Below, piece after piece: positions 14,096 through 64,000 of a DNA stretch of 64,000 bases. The stretch covers positions 396,531 to 460,530 of the forward strand of contig NW_005434634.1 of NCBI RefSeq assembly GCF_000315625.1, in the 5' to 3' direction. Made by a program: the position numbers and the translations under genes. The stretch's first letter is position 1. Each line of letters begins with the position of its first letter. The DNA is from Guillardia theta CCMP2712. Taxonomy: Eukaryota; Protista; Cryptophyta. The notes below the pieces were generated by a model. The model saw nothing but the letters and a program-made list of their open reading frames with translations, did no database searches and had not been told where the DNA came from.

Positions 14096-14225
14096 GAAGA
14101 TCCAGCAAAGTGTGTTCGAAGTGGAGAAACAGCATAAATAGTGCTAGACAAGCAAGACAGTGAGGGGCCGTGCAGCATACACATTAGTTACAGAAGATAT
14201 TTCACAGGACAACAAGCTAGATCCA

Positions 14226-31063: not shown

Positions 31064-33127
31064 TCATGCCAACAGATAGGTTTGCATGTAATCCTCCGCC
31101 ACCTCGAACATGCTAATGCTATCCATCACAAAGCCATACTGCGTGTTGCTCAAGGTCGACAAGGAGTCATCGAACATATTTCATACCTTGATGAGTTGAG
31201 CTCTCAATCTTCGCATTCTATTCAATGCAGAATCACAGCAAGTCTCCGAATTCACCAGCACAATCAAGCTTTTGGCTTCCTCAGCTGTTGAAGGCTCGCT
31301 GACCTCCTCCCCACCCGCCAACCTTTCCAAAGAATCAATCAGGGGGCTCTATCACACTTTCATACCTGAGTAGTTTGCTCAAACTACTTCCATCTGGGTT
31401 CTTCATTCTCGACTTGTCAAGGAGACAAAATCTTTTTCCTCCAAGCTGACAAATAGTGAGAATCGAGGGAAGTTGCTTTGTACGTGTGAACCTTAGCCGG
31501 AGCAAAGATGTCGACACTAGAATGCATCATCAATGAAAGGATTTCCGAACGCTTGAGGGGTCCAAAGTGCTTCCTCTTTCCAACAGTACATCCTCGAACG
31601 ATTTCGCTGTCATTTGGATTTAACCATGCTTGTATACAACGTGAGATGGCGAAAATCATCAAGATGGTTACCTTTTGCCTTTTGACATCGACGAAGCCAT
31701 ACGGGACTCACGAGTTCCACACCACACAGCATTGCATAACAAAACCTGGTAGAAGTCAAATACAACGGTAGCCAAGAAGCATACTACTTCAAAGTTCTTA
31801 TGCTAAGCAAAGATTCGTCTACACAACAAATCATATGAGTCACTGACGAATCTACGTCTTCCTTGCATGATCCACCAAGAACCTGAGTTACAAAGTCAAA
31901 AAATTCAATCCGATGGGTCATACAGTGATTTCACGTGCACAATACATCGAAGTTCCATCGCCTCTACTCGACCTGTATTCATGAATTGTCAACCAATGCG
32001 TCTTGATGAAAAAAAAGAGATTATACCCATCCCAGTAAATGCTACGACTGGCCGAAAAGGTACTGGAAAATATAAACTATTAATGAGGGCAGGAGCAAAA
32101 TGTGCAAAAGGGGTTCACGAATACCTCTCGGACAATTGGAACTTGGTTCAACTTCATCATTGACAAAGCTCCTTCTCTTTGGAGTCTCTGTCATCAATGT
32201 GGATAATCCATCGTATCGAATATAGGTTGCATGTGGTGTTCCCGGAGAAAGAGATGCTCGGTGGCTCTTTTTGGGATTCTTTACAGTAGCAGGCGTGACA
32301 GTAGCATGCAAAGCACTCCTTCTGCCATCCATTGTATTGGGACCCTCTGTGATTCTACTCTTCTTATCTGGCGTGTTTTCGGATTCATCGGTAGTTGTAG
32401 ACAAATCACATTCATCACCATTGCCACGGAAATTCTTCTCCATCCGGGAGCTTTGATCGGACGAAGCTTTAGAAATAAGGATGGCATCCATTGTCTCCGC
32501 ATTCAACTGTACAACTTCCTGGTGTTGTCCGACTTTCTCTGAGACAGCACTGCTCAGTCCCGTTACATCATTTTCTTCATGAAACTCTATCGGAATCTCC
32601 AGGGAAGGCCCGAAATCAATGTCATAGTAAGAGCCATTGACCTCATTGTTGCTTTCATCTACATCCAGCATTGCCGCATGGTAATGTTCCTTCTCAAGCC
32701 CATTGTTGTTAACCCCTTCATCTACATTTGCAACATCCTCCACAGTTTGTTTTGCGTGCTGACGGGGCCTGCCTCGTTTTTTCCGCTTCCCGGCGACCGA
32801 TCTGGCCTTCCACAATGCTTCTCTGGGTGTTTCGGTTTCTGGACTGATCATACCAAGTGCAATGGCCAACTTCTTCGTGATTCCTGTCACCGTTTTCAGC
32901 GTATTGTTCTTCGCCAACGTTCGACGGTTTGTGCCGGGGGTTCTGCAAGATGGACACTCGCTATGGTTGTCTTTGATATACTCACAGATGCACTCTTCGC
33001 AAAAGTTATGCTGACAGGGTGCAGTCCTGGGATCAATCAAGAAATCCAAACATATGGGGCACTTCGTTTCTTGAATCAGCTCCTCAACAGCATTGCGAAG
33101 TTCCCTGTTGTTGGAAATCGAGTCCAT
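31064..33127 (-). CDS. RING finger plus tandem BRCT protein (BRCA1/BARD1-like), multi-exon at the 3' end
   Basis: C3HC4 RING CPICLDFL...PCQHNFCEECI...CPSCR. Disordered linker with KRKKRGRPR. BRCT-like pieces PVVAFTG, VTHMICCVD, YAMLCGVELVSPVWL and FVMDSISMF near the stop. Confidence 0.75.
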
Positions 33128-33289
33128 GACCACAAAGAGGGAAAAATGCCTCCCCTCTTCTATACACTGAATGACAGCTATCAGAATAGCTATCTACTCT
33201 TCACCATCATCTCAACCTTTTCGGCTGTTGCAGCTGCATTCCCAGCACACGTTGCCTTCCCGCCATTGTGCCTTTCACAAACTTTTGAG

Positions 33290-40100: not shown

Positions 40101-43100
40101 GCTTTCTTCCCTGAAGGCATACAATTTGCTTGTAAAATTGGAAACAAGTATGAGCTATATCCTGCAAAGAGAGTCACAAGAACAACTATTGCATGCACTT
40201 GCAGTTTGCGTCAGTCAAGAAATATTTCTCTCTCTGTAACAACAAATGAGCTTGATTTCATTGATTCGCAAATTTGTATGGATGTACCTCCTGATATTTC
40301 GGGACTTCAACTTATCCAGCATAAGGGCACGAGAGAAGTCAGACAAGAAAGTGTTAAAACCCCAACATCGAGTGCACGTTCTGACCTACTTGGGTCCATT
40401 CATCACAATCTACCTCTGCTCATTGAAGAACCCAGGAAATCTAGGATCCAAACCTCCAGGGGAGTTGATATGCTTCGAATTTCACCCTCCATTGGCCCAA
40501 CACTGGGTCATTCTCTTGTCCGTTTGATTTCTGAAGGGCTGCAATCTTTCAGTTACGTCACGTTCAGTCACTCTAGTGGGCTTTTTGAAACCCAAGTGTT
40601 GAGCTCAACTGTTCTGCAATGCAGGACGCCTGCAGGTAGAGCTGGTCCTGTGACTGTTGAAGTTGTTTCAGGTAGTGGTGAACAGTCGCAAGTTGTGTTT
40701 GGCAGATACCTGTACAAAGAACCGGAGCTGATACTCCGAGTTCAGCCATCGGTCTGTCCTGAGCACGGGGGTCTTCTTGTGACTGTGATTGGAGAGCATT
40801 TCACAGCTAGTGAAGATGCTGTATGTAGATTTGGCTCTAGCGGAGAGGATGGGGTCTCAGTCTCAGCTCGGCTTTTGATTTGTCGGTGTCCAGCAAATCG
40901 TGCGGGGGAGGTGTACTTGGATGTAAGCAGCAATGGTGTAGATTATTCGTTGAACAAGATTCCCTTTATGTATACGTCACAAGTGATCATCCTCTCCATC
41001 TATCCAAGCGTCGCAGTTTCTTCTGTCAAGACAGTTGTGCAAGTACGTACGACGCCTGTCCTTTCTTCTGCTTTGCTTTGTCATTTTGGGAATCAAAGTG
41101 CGGTAGCAGTCTTAGAAAGTAGCAGCATTCTCTCGTGTACGACCCCAGCGCATTTGCCTGGTGATGTAGTCTTGCGCATAGAAGAAGCAGAGCACCAATT
41201 TTCCACGGGCGTCACGTTTGCCTTTCTTGAAGCTCCACGAATCATGTCTTTAAACCCGAGCACGTGCTCGTCAGGAATCAGCATGATTCGAATAGTGGGC
41301 AGTGGGTTCGACAAATCGGGTGCCATCTGCATGTTAGGGCAGGAGGTGAAGGTCGACGCGGAGGTACGTAGTACATCAGTAGCCCTTTGCAAATCATCGG
41401 CTCCAAGAGACAGGAAAAACGTGGAAGTGAAGCTTGTTTTCAACGCTTTGCAGTATACGACGAATGGACTGATGCTATACCACTATGAAAGTCCCATGAT
41501 CATGAAGATAATCCCTTCAGTAGTATCAAACCAAGATGCGAGGGTCTTGACCGTATATGGAGACTCTTTTGTGAGCGGTGGAAGCAAAGTTTTCTTGCAC
41601 ATTGGATCCAGCAACATGCTTGAAACTTCACTGGTCTCCAGCACTAAGCTTTTGTGCTCAATTCCCATGTTTCAAAATATGGGCAATTTCTCCGTTTTTT
41701 TGTCGTTTGAGAGGGGTGTTCGGAGTAATTCTATCCTAATTAGTGTTATGAAGGATTCACTGATTCAATTTCACCCGTGTTCTGGGTCTTTGCAAGGTGG
41801 TACCAGCGTTTCTCTAAAGGGTTTCTGGTTCGATGCAGGCATTGGGAGTTGTTTCTTTGGCAACGTCAGTGTCAAACTTTCAGTTACTTCTTCTTCCTCT
41901 GCTGTTTGCGTGACACCACCATCCAAAACGGGCTTAGTTTCATTCAAGATGATTTTTAACGAAGTCATCGTATTGAATGAGAAATTTTATTATCAAGATA
42001 GGATGGAAATCATGTACGTGGACACCTATCCTCTGTTTCGATCTGGTAGATTGAAGGTAATTGGGAATGGGTTTCCTACTGGAGATCTACTTTTCTGCAA
42101 GTTTGACCGTCACTTCCAAAAGGCTGCTTCGGTAATCAGTTCCTCATGTATATTTTGTTTTATACCGACCATGCGTGCTGCTGGTATCGACCTTGAAATC
42201 TTCAATTTTGAGATGCAAGAAGTAAGTAACCGAGTGATAGTACGATCCTTACAGCCTATCATCTATTTTATATCTCCCCGCAAAGTCTTTGTGAACTCGC
42301 TAGTAACAATAACAGGTCTCTTCAATGATGAGAGCTATGTAGTGAATCTTGCAGGACATCACAATACGACTTATTGGGTTCTTTCATCCTCTGAAATTAT
42401 CGTTCAAGTTCCTCATCTGTCACCCGGAAAACATTATGTCAAAGTCTCAATGACGGATGGGGAGAACTCGTTGCACGACATCCGTGGTTTACATTGGATT
42501 GAGGTGCTTGGATTTCTGGATTCCTCTTCGTCTTTGCAAAGGTTGCCTGTGTCAAACGGCTTCTCATCGAATCCTCTCGAATATCCAAATAGCGATAAAC
42601 TTTCTCGTTTACATGATTTTGAGCTTTTGCAAATGATTCCAAGTATTTGTGTCGTTGGTAGTAACTGTGAAGTGAAAATCTTGGGGGTATTTCCTGACAC
42701 TGGTTTGCGATTGTTTTGCCGTGCATTTGATCGGGTTGTACCAGTTGAGGTTTCGTCCTCATCTCATGTTGCATGTTCAATTCCGGTTCTCAAAGAAAGG
42801 AATCTTACCGTCGAGATATGTGAGAACAGTCTTGCGACCTGTTTGGAGTTCCCTGCGCCCGTCTATATTTTACCATACTGGCATCTATTACAAATTCGTC
42901 CGTCAACGGTACCCAGCTCTTCACAAACTCATTTAACCATTGTTGGTCACTCGTTTCAAAGGAATCTGAACTTATCTTGCGTTTTTGGCATTTCGATGAC
43001 CAGCCAGGCGAGTGTTATCACGACAAGTCTTGTCCTTTGTCAGAATCCTGCTTTGGAATACGGCAATTTTTCAATCAATTTGATGTTTGACGGAATTGTC

Positions 43101-46100
43101 ATCGGCTACGAAAATCTGCACCTGAATGTATATCCTCATATTGAGCTCAAGGCTGTTCATCCAGCGACAGCTCAACTTGTGCAGGGAATGATGATCAGTT
43201 TGTTAGGGACTGGCTTTGAACCGACTGTAAGATATTCTTGCAGATTTCATGGATTGAATGGAATTCTGTTTGATGTCGTTGCTTTTGATGTCACTATTAA
43301 TCAGGTGATTTGCAAGCTTCCAAACAGTTCCGCAACTTTGTTAAGGGGAATATCGGTCACGCATTCGCAAGAAACATTGAGTAACATATTTCGTTTACAA
43401 GCAGTAATTTGTCAACGCTATGTATCATATTTTCCAAGCAAAGGGCCAGCTTCAGGTGGAACATTGATCAAATTGATCTATCAGTATCCTATTTCTGGAA
43501 GACTTCTACAAATGACATGGGGGGACTTTCTTTTGAATTGTACATTAATTGGGAATACAATCAGTTTTTTCACGCCTATCTGGAAAAATTTGTCGATGGA
43601 AGTGATTTCGTTCTTGAATGTGGATGGAGCAATATGCAGTGATTCACCGATTAATTTCCAATACTTTGACAATCTGGTGATAGAACAAGTTTTTTATCAT
43701 GTCAATCATACCACAATAGACATTGTAGGCAAGGGATTTTCAAGACAAATTTGTTGCTTGTTCAATGATTCTCTTGTTATTTTGCCTTTGGAAATCTCAG
43801 AAACGCGATTAAAGTGCGCTTTGAGGAATTCATCTCATCCATTGCAAAAACTTGTTATTCTTTCAAACTGTAGCACGTTGGAGGATTCTGATCCTCCTAC
43901 CTTTGTGTGGAATTCTTTGATTCCTTTGTCATTTTTCTCAGTCAAGTTTGATTTTGAAATTTCAAGATTGATCATTGACTTGCATCCTTCTGTCCTTGAT
44001 TTTCCGGGCAAACTTCATTTTCAATCCAAAGAGCTTGGCGTGCCTCTTGCTCCGTTGGATGCTTTACACATCGAAGTTTCAGTTGAAATTCCATACCCAC
44101 GAAGAGACGTTTCAGTTGAATTTTGGCATGAAATATTTGCAACAACGAATATTTACACCGTTCAAATAGAAATTAATCCCATTCCAATTCCTTTGAATCT
44201 GAAGTATAACTTGTATGGTGACAAGGGAGACACAACAGTTTCGTTTAAATTTGATAGTTACTGTGAAATAGCTCTGTGTCACGTTGGGAAAATGTATATT
44301 TTGCCAGAAAGTATCCTTTCCAAGAATTCAGATGCAATCTACGGTCCGAGCTACACTCTGAAATTCTTGGAATCCGAGCAGAATGTCAGAAAGATGCTGG
44401 AAAAGCAGGTGTAAATTTGCTCTTAGAAAATTCTCCAATTTCATGGGCATCTGTCAGTCCCGCACAGACTTGCCAGAGCCTCCCGACAAAGTTGATCTTG
44501 CGCGGTGCTGGTTTCGATTGTCATCAGAAATTGAGATGCAAAATTGGACAATATTTCTCAACATCAGCAAATTGCTTGAGCTCTTCGATGATGAGTTGTT
44601 TCATTAATATTCAACAGGAAGGGAATTTTTCAATTTTCTTGACATGGAATCACATTGATTTTATCGAGACACCATTTGCAATGACTGTGACATCGTTTTT
44701 GCAAGACATCACTATATACCCGACGAAAGGACCATTTCAAGGTGGATCAAAAGTTTTTGTGACGATACCATTGTATAGCACGACAAACCATAGCATAAAA
44801 TGTGTGTTTGGAAACAAGTTGGTTCCTTTGTACACTCAAGACAGAGAAACTCTGTTCTGTTTTGTCCCAAGGCATGTCTTAGCAGAATCCATCGATTTTA
44901 TGATCAGATTCGACAACGTTTGTACCTCCCGGAAACTGCGTTTTCAATACTACAAAGATACAGTGATAGAGAGAATCTATCCAAGGCAAATTCGTACAGG
45001 TGTTGAATCTGAAATTTTTGTTGTAGGCATGTTCCTGGAAAATATATCATTTTGCGTATTTGGAATTCTTCAAGTTCCTACAGCCTTGTTTTCAGTGTCT
45101 GTATTGAGATGCAATCTACCTCCGCTGACATCAGGAAGCTACAAGTTTTCGATGGTACTGAACTCTTCTGATATTTGTGCCTCAGACCTGCTATTGGAAG
45201 TTTATGATCCTGTGATTATCACTGCTGTCATGCCATCAGTTCCCATCTGCAGAGTTGGTGCTGACCTGACTATTGTCGGGAATAATTTTTTGGACACAGA
45301 ATTCCTTTCATGCAAAGTAAACAAGGCGTTGCCAAGCCTTTTACAAATTATTACCTCAACTGCGGTGAAATGCCCTTGTCCATCCTCGACTGAATTATTG
45401 GAGACTATTTCTATCAGTATTGATGGAAAACTGTGGAATCATTCAAAATTGACGATTCAAAATGGACCCAGGATCTTTAAGATTTTTCCAACAATCTCTG
45501 CAATTTTCGGTAGATCAAATGTATCGGTGTACGGAATCGGTTTTGCGAAAAATTCATTCGTTCTATGCAAGTTTGGTCAGCACATTTCTGAACCTGTCAT
45601 GCCCTCCTCCTCTACTTTAATCCACTGTCTCAGGCCAAAAATTGAATTTGCTCCCTTAAATCCCTTGCCATTCCACCTGGGGTTTCAATTCGGGTCTCAC
45701 AGCTTCTATACTTCTTCACACTTGTCTTTTCGATATACGGAAGCCGAAATTTTTTCATTGAAACCGTTGCTGAAGCCAAGCTCTGGGTTTGTCCTTACCA
45801 TCATAGGCAATTTCGGGTTTCTTCAATTTCCCTCATGCAATCTCACCTGTCCAAAACTTTTGCAACCAGCATGCTTTTTGCAATCCTCGTCAATCTTGAA
45901 AGTTCAAATTCCTCCAGTTCAGCAGGTCCATTGCCATCTTCAGATTTCTTTCCAAAATAGAGGAAATTCTCTGAACATCTCTCTCACTTTGAATCGCGAT
46001 CTCCTTTCTCCATCCGTTTCTTCAATTTTTCCAACAACGCTTTCATTGTCCAATGACAAATTCATCACCATCTTTGGAAAACATTTTAGAAAGGAAGCAT

Positions 46101-49100
46101 CCATAGAATGCATATGGGGCTCAAAAATTTCGTTCACTGCATTGTTCTTGAGCCAAACATCCATCCTTTGTGCTGCTCACATTCAAACTACAGGAAACCA
46201 CACCCTTCAAATCATTGATGTAGACCAAAATTCATTAATGTATTCTCATTTCTTTGAAGTTGGCACCGTAGTTCGCATCAATCGTTTCCGAACTGTTTCT
46301 CCAACCTCCAACCCCCAATCTGACCTGAAAGCAAGGAAGATATATCCTTCCTATGGCCCAACACTGGGTCATTCTCTTGTCCGTTTGATTTCTGAAGGGC
46401 TGCAATCTTTCAGTTACGTCACGTTCAGTCACTCTAGTGGGCTTTTTGAAACCCAAGTGTTGAGCTCAACTGTTCTGCAATGCAGGACGCCTGCAGGTAG
46501 AGCTGGTCCTGTGACTGTTGAAGTTGTTTCAGGTAGTGGTGAACAGTCGCAAGTTGTGTTTGGCAGATACCTGTACAAAGAACCGGAGCTGATACTCCGA
46601 GTTCAGCCATCGGTCTGTCCTGAGCACGGGGGTCTTCTTGTGACTGTGATTGGAGAGCATTTCACAGCTAGTGAAGATGCTGTATGTAGATTTGGCTCTA
46701 GCGGAGAGGATGGGGTCTCAGTCTCAGCTCGGCTTTTGATTTGTCGGTGTCCAGCAAATCGTGCGGGGGAGGTGTACTTGGATGTAAGCAGCAATGGTGT
46801 AGATTATTCGTTGAACAAGATTCCCTTTATGTATACGTCACAAGTGATCATCCTCTCCATCTATCCAAGCGTCGCAGTTTCTTCTGTCAAGACAGTTGTG
46901 CAAGTACGTACGACGCCTGTCCTTTCTTCTGCTTTGCTTTGTCATTTTGGGAATCAAAGTGCGGTAGCAGTCTTAGAAAGTAGCAGCATTCTCTCGTGTA
47001 CGACCCCAGCGCATTTGCCTGGTGATGTAGTCTTGCGCATAGAAGAAGCAGAGCACCAATTTTCCACGGGCGTCACGTTTGCCTTTCTTGAAGCTCCACG
47101 AATCATGTCTTTAAACCCGAGCACGTGGACCTCGTCAGGAATCAGCATGATTCGAATAGTGGGCAGTGGGTTCGACAAATCGGGTGCCATCTGCATGTTA
47201 GGGCAGGAGGTGAAGGTCGACGCGGAGGTACGTAGTACATCAGTAGCCCTTTGCAAATCATCGGCTCCAAGAGACAGGAAAAACGTGGAAGTGAAGCTTG
47301 TTTTCAACGCTTTGCAGTATACGACGAATGGACTGATGCTATACCACTATGAAAGTCCCATGATCATGAAGATAATCCCTTCAGTAGTATCAAACCAAGA
47401 TGCGAGGGTCTTGACCGTATATGGAGACTCTTTTGTGAGCGGTGGAAGCAAAGTTTTCTTGCACATTGGATCCAGCAACATGCTTGAAACTTCACTGGTC
47501 TCCAGCACTAAGCTTTTGTGCGCATTTTCAAACTTAGCCTGTGGGAAATATACAGTTGGTGCTTCTTTTGCAGGTCTTGACTATGCTTTTTGGTCACAAC
47601 ATTTTTTTCTTGTTTCATGCCTTGAAAATCCAGAATCTGAAATTTACCTTTACCTTATCAAACCAACTTTTGGATTCCTCAACAGAATCAATCGCGTGTC
47701 TATTATTGGAATCAATTTTGATTCAAATACAAATTGCCAATTTGGAAATCTAGAGTCCTCTCAATTCAAGTACTTGTCAAGCACTCTCTTAGTCTGTCTC
47801 AGTCCTCCGTTTCCCCACATTGACCAGGATATCTTCGAGGTGTCACTAAGCCTACGGCGGGATGGCAGACAACAGCAAGGTACTTTCGCGTATCAATATT
47901 ATCGCACGCCCAGTATTCAATCTGCCTTTCCCGTTGTCTCAACCATTGGCGAATCCATGATCACCGTCTATGGTGCGTCTTTTTCACCTGTTTTTGAGTA
48001 CCAATGTTGCTTTGGAGCACGTGATGAAGTTTTGGCACAAGTCATCACTTCGAGCCAGGTGCTCTGTCATCATACAACGCTGAGGGATGGAAATCACAGC
48101 CTGAAAATCAAGATGAACGGTAACTTGGTGTTGTCTACATCTATGCATATTTTGGTTGAGGGACTGGTCAAAATAAGCAGTTTCACACCAACCCGCGTGC
48201 CACTTCAAGGTGGCGTGCCCCTACGAATTGTGTTGACATCCGACCTAGTACATTCCCAAGTACAGTGCAAGATTGGGGACAGTACTTCAGCGCCCATTTT
48301 TGCTCGAGGCAACTTGATCTTGTGCCGTGTACCTCAGAGAGAACCAGGCAAATGCAAAGTAGCAATCAGCACTCCGAGCGGTCTGCTTACATCTGGGATG
48401 GACTTAGACTACCCGCACGTCTACTACGAGATTCTTTCATATAAACCGACAACATGTTCGCCAAGCGGAGGGACAAAGATCTCTGTAAGGCTCAGTTCTA
48501 TCCTAGAGGATAGGGTTTCTTGTAAATTTGGGACGGTATCAGTGCCAGGTTTGGTGCGGCGTAACGCCAGCCTGGTAGTCTGCCATTCACCAAAGCATGA
48601 CAAGGGGCCCGTGAGTTTTCAACTTGCAGGTGATCATGGGAAGAAATCTGCTTTGTATCCATTTGAATATTTGGAACCTCTCATGATTTTAGATGTTGAG
48701 CCAGCGAGGATTTCTTTGAGCAACAAAACTGTCCAGTTGACCCTGAAAGGTCGAAACTTTGGAGCAGATATGCTGCATTGTAGTATAGGAAGGACACTCC
48801 AAGTACAATGTTTTCCTCGAGACGAGCATACAGCTACCTGCGACTTGACACCAGTCTTGCCTCCCGGAGTACATGTGATAAGCTGTAGCTTGAATCAGGT
48901 AGAGTATCGTACATCAAGGCGAGCACTTGAGGTGGTGTCATACTGTGTGATAAGCTCAGTACACCCGTCACGGGTTCTCTTGTCCTCCAGAGGCCGATTG
49001 ACTATAGCTGGGTCGGGCTTTTCACCAGGAGTCAGCTGTAGATTTGGCACAGCAAATTCAGAACTTGCTGTCTATATTACATCATCACTTTTGCAATGTG

Positions 49101-52100: not shown

Positions 52101-55100
52101 ATTCGTTCTCCTTCTCCGGGATGCTCCACGTAGAAAACTTGAGTGCGGTCAGGCGGGTTGTACCGAGCTACAGTAGATTGGGAGGTGGACAGGCTGTAAA
52201 CATTACTGGCATTGGACTCACAGAACTGTCGAATACTTGTAAGTTTGGATCTACCACTGCCAAGTGTACGCACTTGGACAGTATGATAATGCGGTGTATT
52301 ACACCTCCTGCACAGTCCTCTGGAGGTACATTTTTAGATCTGTACATGGGAGAGAGCTTGTATGCGTCTCTTCCTTTCCTGTACTACCGGGACTGGACAA
52401 TTCAAGTAAGCAGTATCAGACCAACATCCGGTTTGCACAGTACGCAAGTCAGGATAACTTTCAGCGGGCAATTCTCCAATCTACTCGACAACGCAAGATG
52501 CCGAGTAAGAAATACTAAGATTGCAACGCCGTTGATGATTTTGTCTTCGACTGCAATGGGCTGTATCATACCAGCCCTCAGTCCTGGAAGCTATTCCCTC
52601 TACATGGAACAGGAAACGTGGAGGACGAGCGACTTTCATTACATAAGTTTGGAGGGATGGAATGTAGATCGCATCGTACCAAGTAGGGGGTTACGCGAAC
52701 AGTTGAAAACCTTTCGAGTCATAGGGGGCACATTCCGACTTGATGAAGAACTTGATTGCATTGTTGGAAACTTTGTATCGAGGGGAGAGGTACTGACGAG
52801 GTCTGAAATTTTATGTCGAGTAGAAGGTTTGCCTTGTGGAAATTACACTATAGGATTGAAGGCTGGAACTGAAGCCTTCTTTCGCACAAAGCATACACTA
52901 GAGCTATTACTTCCTGTATCGGTAACAAGCATCTGGCCTTCTTCTGGAGTTTGTGATGCCTTTTTCAATGTTTCGATTCATTTATCTGGTGACTTTCGTA
53001 CCCTCGGAAATGCCTCATGCAAGTTTGGTCGACAGTCTTTGGCAATGTTTGATCTCGAAAAGGGATACAGTTGTCAAGTGTTTCAACCATGTTCTGCTTT
53101 TCAGAAGAGATTCAATCTTGTTTCTTTTCAGTTCTGGTTAGATGGTTTCGTGAGCCATCACATGTTCTTTCGAATTCACAAAAATGATTTATCGTTTGCA
53201 TCAACGTTTGTTGCTGATGCTCCAGAACTTGGATTCAAAACATTTTGTCATAGTTTTGAGTACATTTTATACAACGAAACACTTTTGTTTACGGGAAGCT
53301 TGCCCAGTGCATTCCAATCCAGTTTATACTGTTTCTCCCGACAGCGATTTGCTCATGTCGTCCAAAAAACTAAAACGACCTTTCAATGTCAAGCTGAATG
53401 GTTGCGAGAGATGCAAGGAATTTTTATCATGTACCTATCTCATCATGAAAACAGAAGCAATTATACATGCAAAATACCAATTCATGAAATCCAGATAAAT
53501 CGATCTAATCAACAACCACAAATCTTCAGCATCAGACCGAGCCAAGGAAATCATCTATTACACACACGAGTTGAAATACATGGAAAATATTTTCACCAAA
53601 CGGACACATGTATGTTTGGAAATCTAGAGTCCTCTCAATTCAAGTACTTGTCAAGCACTCTCTTAGTCTGTCTCAGTCCTCCGTTTCCCCACATTGACCA
53701 GGATATCTTCGAGGTGTCACTAAGCCTACGGCGGGATGGCAGACAACAGCAAGGTACTTTCGCGTATCAATATTATCGCACGCCCAGTATTCAATCTGCC
53801 TTTCCCGTTGTCTCAACCATTGGCGAATCCATGATCACCGTCTATGGTGCGTCTTTTTCACCTGTTTTTGAGTACCAATGTTGCTTTGGAGCACGTGATG
53901 AAGTTTTGGCACAAGTCATCACTTCGAGCCAGGTGCTCTGTCATCATACAACGCTGAGGGATGGAAATCACAGCCTGAAAATCAAGATGAACGGTAACTT
54001 GGTGTTGTCTACATCTATGCATATTTTGGTTGAGGGACTGGTCAAAATAAGCAGTTTCACACCAACCCGCGTGCCACTTCAAGGTGGCGTGCCCCTACGA
54101 ATTGTGTTGACATCCGACCTAGTACATTCCCAAGTACAGTGCAAGATTGGGGACAGTACTTCAGCGCCCATTTTTGCTCGAGGCAACTTGATCTTGTGCC
54201 GTGTACCTCAGAGAGAACCAGGCAAATGCAAAGTAGCAATCAGCACTCCGAGCGGTCTGCTTACATCTGGGATGGACTTAGACTACCCGCACGTCTACTA
54301 CGAGATTCTTTCATATAAACCGACAACATGTTCGCCAAGCGGAGGGACAAAGATCTCTGTAAGGCTCAGTTCTATCCTAGAGGATAGGGTTTCTTGTAAA
54401 TTTGGGACGGTATCAGTGCCAGGTTTGGTGCGGCGTAACGCCAGCCTGGTAGTCTGCCATTCACCAAAGCATGACAAGGGGCCCGTGAGTTTTCAACTTG
54501 CAGGTGATCATGGGAAGAAATCTGCTTTGTATCCATTTGAATATTTGGAACCTCTCATGATTTTAGATGTTGAGCCAGCGAGGATTTCTTTGAGCAACAA
54601 AACTGTCCAGTTGACCCTGAAAGGTCGAAACTTTGGAGCAGATATGCTGCATTGTAGTATAGGAAGGACACTCCAAGTACAATGTTTTCCTCGAGACGAG
54701 CATACAGCTACCTGCGACTTGACACCAGTCTTGCCTCCCGGAGTACATGTGATAAGCTGTAGCTTGAATCAGGTAGAGTATCGTACATCAAGGCGAGCAC
54801 TTGAGGTGGTGTCATACTGTGTGATAAGCTCAGTACACCCGTCACGGGTTCTCTTGTCCTCCAGAGGCCGATTGACTATAGCTGGGTCGGGCTTTTCACC
54901 AGGAGTCAGCTGTAGATTTGGCACAGCAAATTCAGAACTTGCTGTCTATATTACATCATCACTTTTGCAATGTGAGTATCCGCGCCAGCACAGGCTATCT
55001 CGTTTGACTGTGTACCTTGAAGAGAGTCAAAGCGGGAGTCAGTTGTGTGCGACAACGCTAGGGTATTTTGCAAAGCCTGAAATACTTCATGCGAGCACTA

Positions 55101-58100
55101 TCCGCAATATCCTTACTGGAAACTCGTTTGAAGTGCATATTGCTGGCAGTAATTTTGAACGCACAGCCAAATGCATGTTTTCATATGATGGACAACAGCT
55201 GACAGCGAGTGTGCTCTTTTCTTCTTCTTCTCTGGTAAGATGTGTCCTCAATGAGAAATACTTAATGAAAAGTGGTAGCAATCTGCTATTCTTGAGTAAT
55301 GACGGAATCGATTACATACAAGTAGGTTCAGACTGGGCAGAATGTGCACCAGAGCCTGTCCCGCTGCATTTTCATCCAAGTTTTGGTCAAGCACTTGGAG
55401 GCACAAGAGTAACATTTTCTGGCAGTAGGATATCTCGAATAGCTCGATGCCTGATAGAGTTCAGGTGTAGATTCGGAAATAAGGATGCGATGGAAAGCAA
55501 GATACTCTCTTCTTCTAGGCTGATGTGCTTGAGTCCACCCCAGGTCGAAGGAAATGTGACTCTCCGTCTGATGGCACAAGGGATGCAATTGAACAACAAT
55601 GCCATGCTTTTCGAGTATCAGAAGGTCTTCAACCTATACAGCTTCACGCCTCAGTCATTCTTGGCGGGATACGAGGTGAATGTGACCATCATTGGGTCTG
55701 CATTCATGAGATACTCTGAGTACCAATGCGTTTTAGGAAAACATGAGGTTCGTGCCGCATGGCTGTCCTCATCATGTTTGGTATGTAAGTCAGGGATCCA
55801 CCGAGAGGCATCATGGATCGCCTTGAGCATCTGCACGGGCAACATTTCACAATCTTGCGTCGTCATGAAGCACAAAGCTCGCGTTTCCCCCAGGCCTGAA
55901 GTACAGAGCATCAAACCATCCAATGGGCCATCGCTCGGTGGGACGAGATTGACGATCTTTGGAAAATACCTTGATTTGATCAATGCCAAGTGCACTTTTG
56001 GATTTGCAGGTACAACTCCAGCAAGAGCAGAGACTTCGTCGCTTGCTACCTGTATCACCCCTTGTACAGATCCGGGGATCGAAAGCTTTGGGTATGGGTT
56101 TGAGCTATGGGAGTACTTAGGTCCCTTGACGTATACATTCATCAGCGAAACTACAATTCTTAGTGCAAGCCCAACTTATGCAGTCTTATGCAAGAATGAA
56201 GCGATCACGGTGCATGGATTCAACTTCGACGCAAAAACAAGCTCGTGTTACATGAATGATATGAGGACAACACTACGACTTCTGGACCAGTACACTGCTA
56301 TTTGTACTTTGCCTTGTCTGGAAGAATTTCTGGGTAGAATAGTACTGAGGGTCTGTGCACAAGGATACAATTGTTCAAGCTCTTTCGTGAATCTTCAAAC
56401 CCAACTCAGCAGCTCCCCGATAGCTATCTCACCGACAAGATCTCCACTCCAAGGAGGTATTCGTATTAGACTAGATGGAGATTTCAACAAAGACAAGTAT
56501 AGCATAAATGTCAGTTTAGGGCAGTTTTCGGTATCAGTCACGAAGAACAGATCTAGCAATGGATTGTATGAGTTCTTCTCACCGCCTCAGAGTGTCACAG
56601 GCGTCTTCAACTTTTCTGTGAGGATACCTGGATCTGCTTTCGAGATTGGTTCCTTTGTACTTGAGTACTACTCCTATGCAGAAGTCACTAGGTTGATACC
56701 GTCCTGTAGCTGGCTCCGGGATAGTTTCAAGCTAACCTTGGTTGGTTCAAACTTTTTAGATCAAACTCATTGCCAAGTTGGAGATTTCAGCATTTCTGGT
56801 ACTTCTTTCATTTCCTCTAGCCTGATCATATGTCCGGTTGCAGCATTTCATAGTTTCAAACCGTATGCTGAAGTGGAAGTGAAGCTTCTAAATGATGGGA
56901 TCTCGAGTTGTTGCTATGCTAATCATTCAATATTCTACTACAAGCAACAATGCCTCATTTTGCGGGTCCATCCTGCCGTTGGCGGTCTACTTGGAGGCCA
57001 GTCGGTGCAGCTTACCTTGAGCACAGAACTTGACGTCGAGGGCTCAGTGGTTTGTCAATTTGGAAAGATACAGGTTTCTGGATCTATGCTCTCATCGTCC
57101 GTTGTACTGTGCGTCAGTCCACCGTCAGAGAATGCAGCAAATGTGTCATTGAGTATAACCATCGATGGCATCATCGTTGCAACATCGTCAGAGGAATACA
57201 AGTATGTAGATCTTGGGATCATAATCTCGGCAGACCCAAGCTGTTGCATCTCCAACGCTGGTAGGTGTATTGTTTACCAAGCAGCAGATTTGAGTAAGCC
57301 CGAGGCCGTGAGATGCTTGATTGGCAATGATACAGCTCTTCCCTTGAGCATTTCCTCAACCTCCGNNNNNNNNNNNNNNNNNNNNNNNNNNNNNNNNNNN
57401 NNNNNNNNNNNNNNNNNNNNNNNNNNNNNNNNNNNNNNNNNNNNNNNNNNNNNNNNNNNNNNNNNNNNNNNNNNNNNNNNNNNNNNNNNNNNNNNNNNNN
57501 NNNNNNNNNNNNNNNNNNNNNNNNNNNNNNNNNNNNNNNNNNNNNNNNNNNNNNNNNNNNNNNNNNNNNNNNNNNNNNNNNNNNNNNNNNNNNNNNNNNN
57601 NNNNNNNNNNNNNNNNNNNNNNNNNNNNNNNNNNNNNNNNNNNNNNNNNNNNNNNNNNNNNNNNNNNNNNNNNNNNNNNNNNNNNNNNNNNNNNNNNNNN
57701 NNNNNNNNNNNNNNNNNNNNNNNNNNNNNNNNNNNNNNNNNNNNNNNNNNNNNNNNNNNNNNNNNNNNNNNNNNNNNNNNNNNNNNNNNNNNNNNNNNNN
57801 NNNNNNNNNNNNNNNNNNNNNNNNNNNNNNNNNNNNNNNNNNNNNNNNNNNNNNNNNNNNNNNNNNNNNNNNNNNNNNNNNNNNNNNNNNNNNNNNNNNN
57901 NNNNNNNNNNNNNNNNNNNNNNNNNNNNNNNNNNNNNNNNNNNNNNNNNNNNNNNNNNNNNNNNNNNNNNNNNNNNNNNNNNNNNNNNNNNNNNNNNNNN
58001 NNNNNNNNNNNNNNNNNNNNNNNNNNNNNNNNNNNNNNNNNNNNNNNNNNNNCGATCAGAGGGGATGGATTCGTTCTCCTTCTCCGGGATGCTCCACGTA

Positions 58101-61100
58101 GAAAACTTGAGTGCGGTCAGGCGGGTTGTACCGAGCTACAGTAGATTGGGAGGTGGACAGGCTGTAAACATTACTGGCATTGGACTCACAGAACTGTCGA
58201 ATACTTGTAAGTTTGGATCTACCACTGCCAAGTGTACGCACTTGGACAGTATGATAATGCGGTGTATTACACCTCCTGCACAGTCCTCTGGAGGTACATT
58301 TTTAGATCTGTACATGGGAGAGAGCTTGTATGCGTCTCTTCCTTTCCTGTACTACCGGGACTGGACAATTCAAGTAAGCAGTATCAGACCAACATCCGGT
58401 TTGCACAGTACGCAAGTCAGGATAACTTTCAGCGGGCAATTCTCCAATCTACTCGACAACGCAAGATGCCGAGTAAGAAATACTAAGATTGCAACGCCGT
58501 TGATGATTTTGTCTTCGACTGCAATGGGCTGTATCATACCAGCCCTCAGTCCTGGAAGCTATTCCCTCTACATGGAACAGGAAACGTGGAGGACGAGCGA
58601 CTTTCATTACATAAGTTTGGAGGGATGGAATGTAGATCGCATCGTACCAAGTAGGGGGTTACGCGAACAGTTGAAAACCTTTCGAGTCATAGGGGGCACA
58701 TTCCGACTTGATGAAGAACTTGATTGCATTGTTGGAAACTTTGTATCGAGGGGAGAGGTACTGACGAGGTCTGAAATTTTATGTCGAGTAGAAGGTTTGC
58801 CTTGTGGAAATTACACTATAGGATTGAAGGCTGGAACTGAAGCCTTCTTTCGCACAAAGCATACACTAGAGCTATTACTTCCTGTATCGGTAACAAGCAT
58901 CTGGCCCACGTATGGTGCAATGAATTCAAATACCTCAGTGACGGTCCACGGCCTTCGATTTGACAGTCACATGCGGGTATACTTCCACAGACATCCTCTT
59001 TCTTATTCGATTTTGAATTCGACAACATTGATCGTAGATTTCCTCAGTTCCATTCAATATCAATCAGATTACACTTCAGGTTGTGTTGACGCAAATTTTA
59101 CTAATCACACCATTCCTTGCAAAATCACATTCTGGTATCATTCGCATCTTGTGAAAGGAATTTCATTTAGGTTTTCAGCAAAACCCGATTCGAAGTCAGA
59201 CTTTTTGTATGATCCCTTTGCTCAAAACGAGATGTCAAATACAGCAGTTTTTCTTGGACCAACCAAAGGATCCGTGCGGGGTGGAACCAAAGTATTTTTC
59301 AGATTTGTCAATGTTACAGGATCCTTCAAAACTCGATACTGCAAATTTGATTCTGCATTGGAAAAACTTCAATACGCATTTGATCAGTATTATTGCTCAT
59401 CGCCAGCGAACCGGAAAGGACTTGCTAACCTCTCGCTGGGTTGGGATGATTCATATACGGATGATATTAGTGGGGTGCCTTTCCAGTACATTCCTGAAGC
59501 CGTGCTACTCTCGGTTCTCCCTACACAAATCTTCAGCGGGTCCACCGCTGTTTTGACCATACTGGGAGAGTCATTTGATGAGGATGCTCATGTGCGGGTA
59601 GGCGACCGCGCTTGTTTTGGACTGTCTTTCATTTCGTCTACCATCCTGTCTTGCATCATTCCAGCACAGACGCTGGAAGGCTTGCTGCAGGTGTGGGTAT
59701 CCAACACAGGNNNNNNNNNNNNNNNNNNNNNNNNNNNNNNNNNNNNNNNNNNNNNNNNNNNNNNNNNNNNNNNNNNNNNNNNNNNNNNNNNNNNNNNNNN
59801 NNNNNNNNNNCAACCGTCCTCGGTTGATGTCGGAGGTCAACTGGTCACGCTAGTCGGCAAGGGCTTTAGTCGTGACAGGGAGTACGAGTGCGACTTTGGT
59901 AAAGAAGAACGAGTTGGTTGCCAAGGAATCTCGTTAACGGCGGTTGAGTGCAGAGCACCAGCTCACAGGCCTGGGAACGTGAGTCTCAGGCTATGGCACG
60001 GGAACGGTCAGTTCTTAGTCTTGTCCCCGCTGCTTTCGTACCATTCACCGATTCGAGTGGACAGTATCACTCCGAGTTTTGGACCGAGCCGGGGTGGAAG
60101 TCGAGTGACAGTGAATGGTGCTGGCTTTTCTGTTTCAAAGAACTTATTTTGTAGGTTCGGATTTGATGCATCATCGAGTGAAGTAGTAAGCAGTTCTTTG
60201 TTGATCTGCATTACACCGGAGAAACGTCCTAGCCATGATATCATCACTGTTGCGTCCCAAAATGGAACCATTTTGCCTTCATTTGTTTATCACTTTCAAG
60301 ATCCAATCAAAATCCTTGGCATCTGGCCTAGCTTTGGATCAGTACTCGGAGGTACAGTGGTGATATTGAAGGGTGAAGGCATATCGAGACTTAGCCATTG
60401 TCGTTTCGGACATAACAGCTCGCAGACATCTGCGGTGTACACGTCTAGTTCAATCATGCATTGTACCAGTACAACTCATACCACACAAGAAGTAGTGCCT
60501 TTGACAATATCTACAAGCCACGGTGAAGAAAGGCACGTCATGGACTTTGAATACATCGTGCCTTTGAATGTTCTTGAGGTCAGACCGAGAATGGTCTATC
60601 ATGGCTGTGGCATGCAATCTTTGACTGTAATTGGAAGCAACTTGAAGAGGACGGAAGATATGGGATGCCGGTAGGTTCAAAGTACGTAAAGGGGATTTAC
60701 ATGACTTCAACTTCAATGCGATGTAATGTTATATTTGAGCGGCATGGCAAGGCACATCTCAGCGTCACATTGAATGGCGCCGATTATGTTCGGTGCCCTC
60801 AGGCAATAGAGGTACAAGAGGCGATGGAGGTTATGGAAGTCCTGCCTCGCGAAGTGGAGTATGTTGCAGGGACGTTGGTGACCATCGTTGGTACCAACTT
60901 CAATGATAAACTCACATACGAGTGTTTCATTGAACCACGGACTAGCATGAAGGCTAGAGTGATCAATGAAACAGCATTGATTTGTCCACTTTCAATCATT
61001 GACAATCCTTTAGATGAGCTGTGTCTCGGGGTCAGAGTAATTGGACAGGAAAATTGTGCTTTTCACTTGCCATGTGCTGCCTTGTGGCAGGACGCAGAAA

Positions 61101-64000
61101 TCCTGTCTCTTTCACCTTCAAGAGTCAATCTTCTAAGCGCGCCTGTACAAAGCATTCTAGTTGCTGGGAAAGGCTTTCGTCAGTCCAACTACATGTGCAA
61201 ATTTGGTGCACATATCACAGAAGGCACTGTGGTAACATCGAGTTTATTACATTGCCCTGCTCCACGACAATGCGGATCATTCTCATCGTTCGTTACAGAC
61301 TTGAACGGTAATAGCTGCAAGGGTTTGCTTTTGTTTGAAGTTGTTTGTGCCGATTTGTATGGTGTTACTCCCTCCTTTGGGAATGTCTGTGGATCCCAAC
61401 GAATAACGTTGTATGGCAAGGGATTTGCAGCTGCTGGCGATGCTTTCTGTACTTTTGGAAGGGACCAGAGGAGGATTGTAGATGAGTTTCTAAGTAGTAC
61501 TGCTCTTGTTTGCTTGACTCCATCCTGGGACAAGGTCGGTTTAGCAGAGATTTCCGTTCTGTGGGACCATAAAGATCTCCCGACAGATAGCGTGGCTTTC
61601 CGATATGTGTACTCAAGCTCCATTTACCATATTCATCCATCCAGGGGCAGAGTCGCAGGGCAGTTTCGCATTACAGTCTATGGTCACAACTTTCCAACAG
61701 TGAGTAGTGCAGGCATCTTCCATTGCAGGTTCGGACTCCAGAAGACTATTGCATCACGAGTGTCTTCGAGCATTGTGCATTGCAACGTGCCGACAAAAGA
61801 CAGTTTTGCTGTTGTCAACTTCTCGCTGGGTTGGGATGATTCATATACGGATGATATTAGTGGGGTGCCTTTCCAGTACATTCCTGAAGCCGTGCTACTC
61901 TCGGTTCTCCCTACACAAATCTTCAGCGGGTCCACCGCTGTTTTGACCATACTGGGAGAGTCATTTGATGTGGATGCTCATGTGCGGGTAGGCGACCGCG
62001 CTTGTTTTGGACTGTCTTTCATTTCGTCTACCATCCTGTCNNNNNNNNNNNNNNNNNNNNNNNNNNNNNNNNNNNNNNNNNNNNNNNNNNNNNNNNNNNN
62101 NNNNNNNNNNNNNNNNNNNNNNNNNNNNNNNNNNNNNNNNNNNNNNNNNNNNNTGGAAAGTATTCAACCGTCCTCGGTTGATGTCGGAGGTCAACTGGTC
62201 ACGCTAGTCGGCAAGGGCTTTAGTCGTGACAGGGAGTACGAGTGCGACTTTGGTAAAGAAGAACGAGTTGGTTGCCAAGGAATCTCGTTAACGGCGGTTG
62301 AGTGCAGAGCACCAGCTCACAGGCCTGGGAACGTGAGTCTCAGGCTATGGCACGGGAACGGTCAGTTCTTAGTCTTGTCCCCGCTGCTTTCGTACCATTC
62401 ACCGATTCGAGTGGACAGTATCACTCCGAGTTTTGGACCGAGCCGGGGTGGAAGTCGAGTGACAGTCACAGGGTACGGATTTCACTTGGAATCTCACCTT
62501 GTATGTTGCCAAGGTCTTGATTGTCTCCCGGCTGAAATCATTGATTCATCGCACATTCTTTGTGTTCCTGCAATACTCAGCCCTCAACGTTCTTTTGAAA
62601 TTTTCACATGGGCATGTTGTGGGAAGATTTGAGTTCTGTTTATGCGAGACGAGGAGTTTCAATTTGATTAGAACGTCCATGATTGAGAATCTATCCTACA
62701 GCTTCTCCGTCCAAGGAGAATGTTTTGATGCAGGGTTACAGTGCCATTATTTATTTGATGATGGCCAGGAAAGCCTTAGGCAAATAGAGCTGATTTCATC
62801 CACCTTGCTTTCCTGTTCCTTGCCGGTTGTTTTTCAAGGAATACGAGGAATTGAAGTGATTGATTCCAGTATGCGACCTGTTGGAGCTTTATTTGAGCCA
62901 AATCTATCACAGATTCACTCAATCTTGCCTTCTCTTTCAAGTACAATGAGTGGCCTAAGAGTTACTGTAATTGGATATTTCCCAGCCACCAGACTTAATT
63001 GTCATCTTGGATCTCATCCAGGCCATGCTCTTTGGTACTCAAGTAGTGTTGTGTACTGTAATCTTCCAGCAGTCCAGAGGCCAGGGTCATACATGATCAG
63101 GGTTAGCACTTCCGATTCCGTTTCTGAGCTGAGCTCGAAACAAATTGTTTTCTATGAAAGTGTTTCCTTCACTGGTTTTCACATTGATGATTTAAGGTCA
63201 GAAATCCTCATATTTGGTCAGAATTTCAAATCAAATGGAAATGCCATTTGCAATGTTTCAGGACAATTGATCGAGTCAGAAAGAATATCTTCTAGATCCT
63301 TAAAATGTCTACTCCACATGAAACAAAGTGAGATAACATATGTTTCAGTCTTGGTTGACGATTCTCACTATGTTGTCGAACCACTCTCTGTCACCGAGTT
63401 GACTTTGCTATTCGTCCGTCCATCGATGGCACCAATGTCCGGAGGAATGATAATTACAGTAGTGGGGAAAGGTTTTGACGTTTCAAGGTTTATGACTATC
63501 GGAGGTATCAAAACTCCCTTTGAAATAATAACGAGTTCCTTGATACTGCTGTTGGTTCCAAGCATTCAACGTGAAGTATCCCCACGTATTTGTTTAACGC
63601 ATGCCATGACTTCCATTGGAGCTTGTCTTGAGAAGGCGTACTCCTACGTTCGTAATCCACATTTGATTGAAATACTTCCTTCAAGCTTTGACCAGGAATA
63701 TCACGTGATGATCACTGCAATAGGGGAACACTTTGATGATGCATTGAATTTACGATGCAAACTCAGTTTGATGTCTACAGATACAGTATTTCTCAGCTCT
63801 TCGAGGGTTTTATGCAGATTTGATCGTATTGACAGTCAGGCTAATTTATCATTTTCAATCCTCTGTGGAAATTTTTCCTGTGGCGATAAGAGTTTGTTGT
63901 TTTCATTCCCAAGTATTTATTTTCGAGTTGCACCAACAACAGTGATTTACGACCAAACGACTCTTTTGCGAATACAATTTTCACAAAGGCACAATCAAAG
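34115..64000 (+). CDS. Giant secreted or cell-surface IPT/TIG-repeat protein (about 10,000 aa or more, roughly 100 domains), runs off the window, with 3 frame breaks and 3 gaps
   Basis: Signal peptide MSRIIALLLILCLWDAQS at 34115. Introns 34446-34503 and 34765-34818. Then ORFs of 3200, 4622, 869 and 655 aa and an open frame from about 62.6 kb to the end, all repeating [I/V]xPxxGPxxGGTxVxVxGxxF...CxFG...SSxxLxCxxP every 85-95 aa. Many N-x-S/T sequons. Confidence 0.9.
40493..41657 (+). repeat. Cassette R1 copy a (second copy 46354-47521)
   Basis: Identical by eye except a 3-nt insertion (TC vs TWT) in copy b. Confidence 0.95.
46354..47521 (+). repeat. Cassette R1 copy b
   Basis: Direct repeat of 40493-41657, offset 5861/5864. 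Confidence 0.95.
47741..52938 (+). repeat. Cassette R2 copy a (5.2 kb, second copy 53615-58906)
   Basis: Direct repeat with offset 5874. One substitution noticed (C50784 vs T56658, Ala/Val). Confidence 0.95.
53615..58906 (+). repeat. Cassette R2 copy b, interrupted by an N gap
   Basis: Matches 47741-52938 on both sides of gap 57366-58052. Confidence 0.93.
57366..58052. other. Assembly gap (687 N), other gaps at 59711-59810 and 62041-62153
   Basis: N runs. All three lie inside duplicated cassettes. Confidence 1.
59431..60112 (+). repeat. Cassette R3 copy a (second copy 61821-62466)
   Basis: Direct repeat. One substitution noticed (A59581 vs T61971, Glu/Val). Both copies contain N gaps. Confidence 0.92.
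61821..62466 (+). repeat. Cassette R3 copy b
   Basis: Matches 59431-60112. Confidence 0.92.

Follow-up and report, generated by a model that had tools for sequence, protein, structure and literature searches.

Near-identical, GC-rich block pairs inside a giant IPT/TIG gene of Guillardia theta, probably maintained by GC-biased gene conversion

Near-identical multi-domain units within a single giant gene are familiar from the LPA kringle IV-2 array, the nebulin triplicate region and the titin repeat block, in all of which they are arranged head-to-tail in tandem. Trypanosome VSG, Borrelia vlsE and Neisseria pilE/pilS are cassette gene-conversion systems for surface variation. GC-biased conversion acts on duplicates such as those of human gene families, histone and Hsp70 paralogues and rDNA, and leaves tracts that greatly exceed their flanks in similarity, have sharp ends and are richer in GC the more partners there are. 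In human duplicates, converted tracts have 48.9% GC, about 10 points above the 39.6% of matched unconverted DNA (bioRxiv 10.1101/135152). The Dictyostelium proteins TgrB1 and TgrC1 carry extracellular IPT/TIG domains and are encoded at a locus prone to duplication and recombination (PMC12745789). In polycystin-1 and the sea-urchin REJ receptors the Ig-like ectodomain is very long and leads into REJ and then into several membrane helices; REJ genes have also been described in a brown alga (PMC4700764).

The window analysed here, a stretch of 64,000 nt from Guillardia theta CCMP2712 (contig NW_005434634.1, positions 396,531 to 460,530), contains part of a giant IPT/TIG gene on the plus strand (34115-64000). 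It was delimited from stop-free stretches, which form seven reading pieces here; each of them matches Pfam TIG (PF01833) above the gathering score (E 1e-17 to 1e-235). The whole gene spans ~94.5 kb or ~31,000 codons, ending at about C40:525108 (128578 in window-continued coordinates), and is estimated to encode ~250 IPT/TIG domains, 231 of which were detected with a self-built HMM; the domain period is 258-261 nt. A start codon and a hydrophobic N-terminus (34115-34168), which would act as a signal peptide, lead into the first IPT domain (TIG match at 34115-34459). Reading in three frames gives a probable phase-1 GT-AG intron of 58 nt that separates the first IPT domain from the second (34446-34503) and a second putative intron of 54 nt at 34765-34818. 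SRCR, many filamin-type Ig repeats, REJ (PF02010 in L015:1-4578; E 1e-21, 77.5 bits) and membrane helices follow in the downstream part, and the product is predicted to be a secreted or multi-pass membrane protein. The order of these parts is that of polycystin-1 and the REJ receptors, although IPT/TIG and filamin repeats take the place of the PKD repeats and Pfam finds no GPS, PLAT or channel-like domain. The searches for GPS and PLAT covered the C-terminal 1,526 residues at E <= 0.01, where distant versions could escape. PF08016, the channel-like last six helices, has no match in the giant gene; the only one is a separate polycystin-channel ORF 3.6 kb downstream, past a minus-strand Rce1-like gene. 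Compared by sequence with solved structures including polycystin chains, the REJ/membrane part gave no match. Literature searches returned no description of these giant IPT genes.

Self-BLASTN and exact-run tracing bear out the layout proposed in an earlier note on this DNA, which had described three different blocks, each occurring twice in almost identical form and separated by unique sequence. The order is R1a-U1-R1b-U2-R2a-U3-R2b-U4-R3a-U5-R3b, all on the plus strand, with R1 (1,165 nt), R2 (5,198 nt) and R3 (~0.68 kb) present in two copies each at 99.9-100% identity. R1a (40493-41657) comprises 1,165 nt or ~4.5 IPT domains and has 48.1% GC against 40% in its flanks. It is separated by the unique spacer U1 (41658-46353; 4,696 nt, ~18 diverged IPT domains, 39.9% GC) from R1b (46354-47521), whose sole difference is an in-frame insertion of 3 nt at 47128-47130. 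A short spacer, U2 (47522-47740; 219 nt, GC ~36%), leads to R2a (47741-52938; 5,198 nt, ~20 IPT domains, 46.6% GC), and U3 (52939-53614; 676 nt, GC ~38%) separates this from R2b (53615-58906), within which lies an assembly gap of 687 N (57366-58052). Over the 4,605 nt that can be compared, the two copies differ once, R2a having C at 50784 and R2b T at 56658 (Ala/Val). After U4 (58907-59430; 524 nt) come R3a (59431-60112; 53% GC, gap 59711-59810), U5 (60113-61820; 1,708 nt) and R3b (61821-62466; gap 62041-62153); the R3 copies differ by one mismatch and contain one gap each.

The edges of the blocks are sharp, identity falling from 100% to approximately background at a single base. Every junction lies in a frame that is stop-free for 150 nt on either side, and the two copies are cut at one and the same point of a full-length IPT domain, as had been claimed. 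Nor does the claim that the other IPT domains are highly diverged need revision: of ~26,000 domain pairs, none outside the blocks reaches 50% amino acid identity and the mean of these others is 21%, so the blocks lie far beyond chance. Four further block pairs are found downstream in the gene, just beyond the window. The cores of the seven pairs contain 3 substitutions and 1 indel in ~7.9 kb; divergence is at most 0.5% in every pair, there are no intermediate identities (none at 50-95%), and only at a few edges (the right edge of R7 and the edges of R4) are there short zones of 70-90% identity. Head-to-tail adjacency of identical units was not seen. The pairs resemble LPA, nebulin and titin in being in-frame, domain-preserving, near-identical units of one giant gene for which copy-number instability is expected, but unlike the units of those tandem arrays they have unique domains, unrelated to them, in between, over 0.2-4.7 kb (4,696, 676 and 1,708 nt for R1, R2 and R3).

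The blocks also stand apart in composition. All of 44 edges show a step in GC content from 40% to 50% (40.5 versus 49.8%) exactly at the edge base, every one of 24 comparisons with unique flanking sequence finds the block richer in GC, and 17 of the 18 array windows with a GC content of at least 48% fall in blocks. The shift affects all three codon positions and the amino acid make-up. The same block pattern recurs in two unrelated giant IPT genes, C67 and C56. A gap-free stretch of the C67 gene contains six pairs, all with offsets that are multiples of 3 and with edges in register; identity between this gene and the one in the window (C40) is of the merely generic order of 21-25%. In the C56 gene, GC climbs from 44% to 49%, 51% and 56-59% as the number of extra copies grows; a trial of majority-rule singleton polarity on its four-copy family met a copy that is just partly homologous. 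The GC jump exactly at the block edges, rising with copy number, is new here and is a signature of GC-biased non-allelic gene conversion.

We consider it probable, at roughly 70%, that the block pairs are genuine duplicates within one gene that are kept near-identical and GC-rich by GC-biased gene conversion, that is, by concerted evolution. As expected of conversion, the duplicated tracts are far more alike than the adjoining sequence and end sharply, and GC enrichment is confined to the tracts and increases with the number of copies. The blocks, their edges and domain register, their occurrence in reads, their absence from the rest of the genome and the compositional step are observed directly; that conversion is the cause, how old the duplicates are and by what mechanism they arose is what we infer from these patterns. 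Each pair would most likely go back to a rare event that copied part of the array in register, since when recurrent non-allelic intragenic conversion would have held the copies almost identical. As the mismatch repair that accompanies conversion is biased towards G/C, the converted tracts would drift to ~50% GC and the surrounding unique domains would stay at ~40%. Edges would remain sharp because conversion cannot pass the end of homology, and because the edges are in register every boundary domain is a complete chimeric domain. The outcome would be homogenisation of a few multi-domain modules, and copy-number instability of the array may follow. In known systems of GC-biased conversion the partners are not, as here, pieces of one coding array 2-10 kb apart, nor do the tracts, up to 5.2 kb long in this gene, end in register with an 86-aa domain. 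The process looks like concerted evolution, not programmed diversification. A hint in favour of this reading, in that copies within a genome may be more alike than orthologues, comes from an environmental relative (metagenome reads, X4). Between it and the reference, R2 has 136 differing sites (2.6%), though two or more strains may be mixed in the metagenome; the X4 contig nevertheless breaks off at the R2 edge of the reference, from where one path leads into U3 and another into U4-like sequence. Part of the high GC may have come first and favoured conversion, instead of resulting from it. A point against the conversion model is that it leaves unexplained the origin of the non-tandem layout, two copies around a unique spacer; the domains concerned share just ~21% identity, so ordinary homologous recombination cannot start there.

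Two older histories were considered and set aside. The R1 and R2 offsets both correspond to ~22 domains (5861 and 5874 nt), as an ancient higher-order repeat might leave them; identity is flat at 21% for lags of 1-60 domains, without periodicity, and U1 and its counterpart 22 domains away are at background. Larger duplications that have since eroded are not apparent either, the flanks reaching background within ~90 nt at almost all edges.

The gapped state of the draft scaffold raises the question of whether each block is really single, with merged haplotypes or misplaced reads giving the appearance of two. Three gaps do sit within R2b, R3a and R3b, frame breaks cluster in the same region (44-90 kb), and the lengths of reads and clone inserts are similar to the block sizes and offsets (~2.4 and ~6 kb). 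Contigs built independently of the assembly from the reads of independent runs (X1 and X2, along with the X4 metagenome) speak strongly against such an artefact, even though contigs of this kind can mask differences between block copies. In X1, R2 is a single contig of exactly 5,198 nt, and a 736-nt contig consists of 30 nt of the R2 end, U3 and 30 nt of the R2 start; U3 is also covered by contigs from X2 and X4. X1 contigs of 279 nt (30 + U2 + 30) and 584 nt (30 + U4 + 30, with loose-end letters that match the assembly) stop exactly 30 nt inside R1 and R3, placing branch points of the read graph at block edges, among them the right edge of R1b. X2 has the same junctions as X1, both match the assembly, and the exit from R2 in X4 is that of the reference. 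As the read contigs reproduce the R2 unit, the U3 junctions and the R1/R3 branch points, the blocks are not scaffolding artefacts. In the read graph, R2 is 2.7-3.4x as deep as the spacers U2, U3 and U4, about 3x overall, which counts against a single copy; two copies would give 2x, and the excess possibly reflects library GC bias or a third copy. The pattern is found without any gap in the C67 gene, and an artefact would neither preserve frame and domain register at every junction nor make a GC step; a clone-insert or read-length origin of the offsets was rejected on the same grounds, frame, register and GC step being biological. Thus, an artefact is largely refuted for R2 and very improbable overall. 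An exact look-up of the product of the U3 contig in public assemblies found none on record, and no relatives were found among JGI metagenome contigs.

If the copies are genuine, they could instead be very recent one-off segmental duplications, without continuing conversion, caught before divergence or loss. The near-zero divergence between copies is what such a history predicts, instability is to be expected of direct repeats at distances of 2-8 kb, and the few edges with zones of 70-90% identity could be read in the same way. However, a fresh copy of a random piece would carry the composition of the array, whereas the blocks are GC islands with a step at every edge, account for nearly all of the GC-rich windows and become richer as copies are added. 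Extreme turnover would also be required to leave all seven pairs so little diverged and none between 50 and 95%, and the R2 edge is apparently common to the relative at 2.6% divergence; this history is therefore unlikely. Still less probable, to our mind, is a dedicated or selected system of the kind that the earlier note had in view, in which IPT cassettes are moved within the gene to give strain- or cell-specific ectodomains of a recognition receptor. In-register, non-tandem copying does recur in several giant IPT genes, the IPT domains are extremely diverged, and REJ and GEX2-like filamin domains are known from gamete-recognition proteins in other lineages. Against this, searches of the whole 87-Mb genome with the DNA of R1, R2, U1 and U4/R3 found no copy outside the giant gene, so there is no cassette archive. 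In this gene there are only a few pairs of exactly two copies each, the three read sets agree on the junctions, the visible effect is homogenisation, and almost no RNA was detected (7 reads in one raw run). In VSG, vlsE and pilE, as in the giant gene, segments of coding sequence are copied in frame into a gene for a surface protein, but here there is no silent donor archive, expression-site logic or sign of switching, and donor and acceptor are both in the same reading frame.

Of the earlier interpretation, then, recombination or conversion within the gene gains support from near-identity, sharp edges and a 10-point GC step that scales with copy number; exchange among paralogs does not, the blocks having no counterpart in other IPT genes. 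No evidence was seen that the process diversifies the protein; a few block pairs are homogenised within an array that is otherwise very diverged. A role as a coat protein finds no support in the RNA reads of one run, which barely cover the gene, and the analogy with Tgr is likewise unsupported. The Tgr proteins are small, span the membrane once and come from paired polymorphic genes at a rearranging locus, whereas this is one gene of ~31,000 codons for an IPT-SRCR-filamin-REJ multi-pass membrane protein, beside which no partner gene was seen.

The giant gene is not a single open frame in the assembly. Frame breaks occur at ~44267-44411 (U1), at ~60650-60671 (U5) and at ~62596-62629, just after R3b. 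That at ~60650-60671 falls within one IPT domain and adds no length, so it is not an intron; the break at 62.6 kb and two more at 68.46/68.57 kb likewise leave the length unchanged, and all four resemble shifts of 1-2 nt. Introns were considered as a cause of the breaks and offered many GT-AG candidates, none compelling; 86526-86573 (48 nt) alone looks like one. The gap in R2b most likely stands for 593 in-frame nt, equivalent to R2a 51492-52084, rather than the estimated 687, since the reads give R2 as one unbranched unit of 5,198 nt; with a fill of 593 nt the R2 offset, 5874, keeps the frame (0 mod 3). R3 presumably continues across both of its gaps, the offsets on either side (2390 and 2354) differing by 36, also 0 mod 3, and R3b keeps the usual domain period of 258 nt. 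For annotation and assembly, the identical blocks are real, the R2b gap can be filled by inference and several frame breaks need checking.

At ~94.5 kb and 31,000 codons, few known coding sequences are longer, and the gene is one member of a family of similar giants. Were in-register, non-tandem copying of IPT blocks to be recurrent, selected ectodomain remodelling in giant recognition receptors, which we doubt, it might serve mating or cell-cell recognition, for example; the mosaic of blocks would then vary from strain to strain, and those rich in GC would be the modules active now. On the conversion reading, what appeared to be a cassette shuffling system is recast as intragenic GC-biased gene conversion, and the giant IPT genes would provide a clean, quantitative case of that process inside single genes of a microbial alga, with a dose response to copy number.

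Self-BLASTN of the window recovered exactly the three pairs of near-identical blocks that the earlier note had described in the giant IPT/TIG gene, arranged on the + strand in the order R1a-U1-R1b-U2-R2a-U3-R2b-U4-R3a-U5-R3b, where U1-U5 are unique spacers. After refinement of the edges by tracing exact matches, R1 lies at 40493-41657 and 46354-47521, R2 at 47741-52938 and 53615-58906, and R3 at 59431-60112 and 61821-62466. The R1 cores differ solely by a 3-nt in-frame insertion in R1b, the R2 cores by one substitution (50784 C/56658 T) and the R3 cores also by one; the end mismatches in the BLAST alignment of R1 come from chance matching outside the true edges, not from real divergence. Identity falls from 100% to approximately background within one base, with almost no graded identity beyond the edges. 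All 12 junctions lie in a frame that is open for 150 nt on either side, and they occupy identical positions within a complete IPT domain in the two copies: residues ~5 and ~50 for R1, 28 and 2 for R2 and ~60 and ~15 for R3. Outside the blocks every pair of IPT domains is <50% identical (mean 21%, ~26,000 pairs compared), the few pairs at 55-83% being the chimeric boundary domains, and no trace of an old higher-order repeat was found in the array. The block pairs are thus confirmed, far above chance.

The R2 layout was compared with reads from four public runs, using as target 51492-57365, a stretch that amounts to a circularly permuted R2 unit with U3 at its centre. Among contigs assembled from the reads of DNA run X1, R2 forms a single one of exactly 5,198 nt at depth 168. 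Another, of 736 nt and depth 50, consists of U3 between the last and first 30 nt of R2. One of 584 nt (depth 60) has the final 30 nt of R2 followed by U4, and one of 279 nt (depth 63) reaches from U2 to 30 nt inside the start of R2. The letters at the loose ends match the start of U4 and the end of U2 in the assembly. The lengths of the last two contigs equal U4 + 60 and U2 + 60 exactly to the base, so these contigs end exactly 30 nt inside R3a and R1b, and the left edge of R3 and the right edge of R1 are therefore branch points in the reads as well. The same junctions occur in run X2 (2011), where a single T>C difference within 56010-57365 fits the R2a/R2b mismatch at 56658. The R2-U3-R2 arrangement exists in the reads. 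The depth of R2 in X1 is 2.7-3.4 times, not twice, that of U2, U3 and U4, and it is about 3 times that of U3 in the freshwater metagenome X4 (~15 versus 4.6). A third copy of R2 is a possible source of this excess, but the junction graph has no path for one; it may instead reflect GC bias of the library, since the spacers U2-U4 have 36-41% GC as against 47% for R2.

Runs of N interrupt R2b (57366-58052), R3a (59711-59810) and R3b (62041-62153). As R2 is unbranched in the reads along its full length, the gap in R2b should contain the same 593 nt as 51492-52084; with that length the offset between copies remains 5874, a multiple of three, and the frame continues. Across the R3 gaps, continuity is suggested by internal consistency: the offset changes by 36 nt from one side to the other, and R3b keeps a domain period of 258 nt. 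The gene is not a single frame in the assembly, with breaks at ~44267-44411, ~60650-60671 and ~62596-62629. The last two are shifts of 1-2 nt, whether errors or real, and not introns, because they add no length to the domain period. Two compensating shifts ~110 nt apart occur at 68440-68580 in window numbering continued downstream, as used from here on (L005:4440-4580 of a downstream piece), where an IPT domain reads in frame 1 between stretches in frame 0; these represent consensus errors or else a genuine compensated pair. A 48-nt segment, GTATGA...TACAG, at 86526-86573 (L006:2526-2573) holds the sole stop between same-frame stretches of 4,273 and 1,273 codons and, to judge from its sequence, looks like a short in-frame intron.

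The gene begins at 34115 (+) with a start codon and a hydrophobic leader followed by the first IPT domain, and two candidate short GT-AG phase-1 introns lie near its 5' end, downstream of this start. From 34803 to the window end it is open in a few very long stop-free stretches, all rich in IPT/TIG domains (Pfam PF01833, E down to 1e-235), with one domain per 258-261 nt by a profile made from the gene's own domains. With 70 kb of additional downstream sequence, the frames run on to ~128578, one stretch comprising 10,500 codons; 231 IPT domains were detected, reaching ~101.3 kb, and they are followed in the 3' direction by an SRCR domain, numerous filamin/GEX2-type Ig repeats, a REJ domain and several hydrophobic helices. 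In all, the gene spans about 94.5 kb, or about 31,000 codons. The gene is barely expressed in the sample of raw run X11, as only 7 RNA reads fall on 51492-57365. Its part at 34205-64000 has 42% GC (unique domains ~40%) against 48% in the neighbouring genes and spacers at 1-34000, which puts the duplicated blocks near the genome's local average. Outside the window, 3.6 kb downstream of the giant gene, lies a separate ORF (L015:8171-9394 = C40:528701-529924, +) that encodes a polycystin cation-channel domain (PF08016, E 2e-19). An Rce1-like gene (L015:4741-6087, -) stands between the two; by analogy, the REJ-domain gene and this ORF may form a receptor-channel neighbourhood resembling PKD1/PKD2. 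ORFs in the window at 13298-14143, 32045-33193 and 690-5751 (all -), with RWP-RK, RING-finger and neurobeachin-type (DUF4704) domains, respectively, are ordinary eukaryotic genes without relation to the blocks.

Extended self-comparison revealed four further pairs beyond the window, 72875-73074 with 79102-79301, 83973-84207 with 89196-89430, 85752-86149 with 94202-94599 and 87407-88164 with 95197-95954, all with core identities of 99.5% or more and edges in domain register. Giant IPT genes are numerous in the genome (87.1 Mb, 669 scaffolds), which yields at least 1,350 candidate domains; their open frames reach 16,482 codons. Those with frames of 8,000-16,482 codons lie at C67:49791-112915 (-), at C56:180-245 kb (+) and on scaffolds C25, C2 and C134. 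They relate to the gene in the window at the generic domain level only (21-25% identity), and each contains near-identical, GC-rich blocks of its own. A gap-free stretch of the C67 gene holds six pairs (99.1-99.7% identity as given by BLASTN), with all six offsets multiples of three and all edges in register; the C56 gene has block families of up to five copies, 87-99.8% identical. As identity between the window's gene (on C40) and the C67 gene is just 21-25%, the pattern has arisen independently in each. IPT domains on two small unplaced scaffolds (C515:2654-2911 and C488:306-533) score the same as those of the C56 and C134 genes and are probably repeat copies that the assembler left unplaced.

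The decisive new observation is a step in composition. Every block is GC-richer than the unique DNA that flanks either copy, as seen in 24 of 24 comparisons across two genes. Averaged over 44 edges in 25-nt bins, GC is 0.39-0.43 outside and 0.47-0.54 inside in every bin; the step sits at the edge base, and the inside exceeds the outside at all 44 edges. Nearly all IPT-array windows with GC of 48% or more (17 of 18) lie within blocks, where composition is shifted at each of the three codon positions and in the encoded amino acids. GC in the C56 gene increases with the number of extra copies, from 44% with none to 49% with one, 51% with two and 56-59% with three or four. A random part of the array, freshly copied, would be no GC island, whereas a block passing repeatedly through heteroduplex repair biased to G/C would become one, which argues for gene conversion. 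Converted tracts of human duplicates show the same contrast, 48.9 versus 39.6% GC, with the proviso that GC might in part drive conversion besides resulting from it (bioRxiv 10.1101/135152). As to how the copies were first placed, a single unequal crossover would yield them head to tail, unlike the non-tandem R-U-R layout, which stands between domains sharing ~21% identity; our guess is that template switching through microhomology at conserved motifs, with selection then favouring intact domains, could have produced it.

Freshwater and lake metagenomes X4, X7 and X8 contain DNA 96-99% identical to the giant gene, so a close relative of the sequenced strain lives in such waters, going by the run labels. 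In X4 the relative's R2 carries 136 differences from the reference (2.6% of sites), while the contig breaks off at the R2 edge known from the assembly, where it is continued both by U3 and by U4-like sequence; this hints at concerted evolution, although more than one strain may be present.

The earlier note had proposed cassettes shuffled within the gene or among paralogues to diversify a surface protein. Exchange among paralogues found no support: R1, R2, U1 and U4/R3, searched across the whole genome, have no further copy, in other IPT genes or elsewhere. Cassette diversification and the analogy with the Dictyostelium Tgr proteins are likewise unsupported; there is no donor archive, and three read sets show identical junctions. 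Ongoing conversion within the gene is supported by the GC step at the edges, its rise with copy number and the near-identity of the copies. We therefore read the pairs as products of concerted evolution, duplicates that GC-biased non-allelic gene conversion keeps identical; the visible effect is homogenisation.
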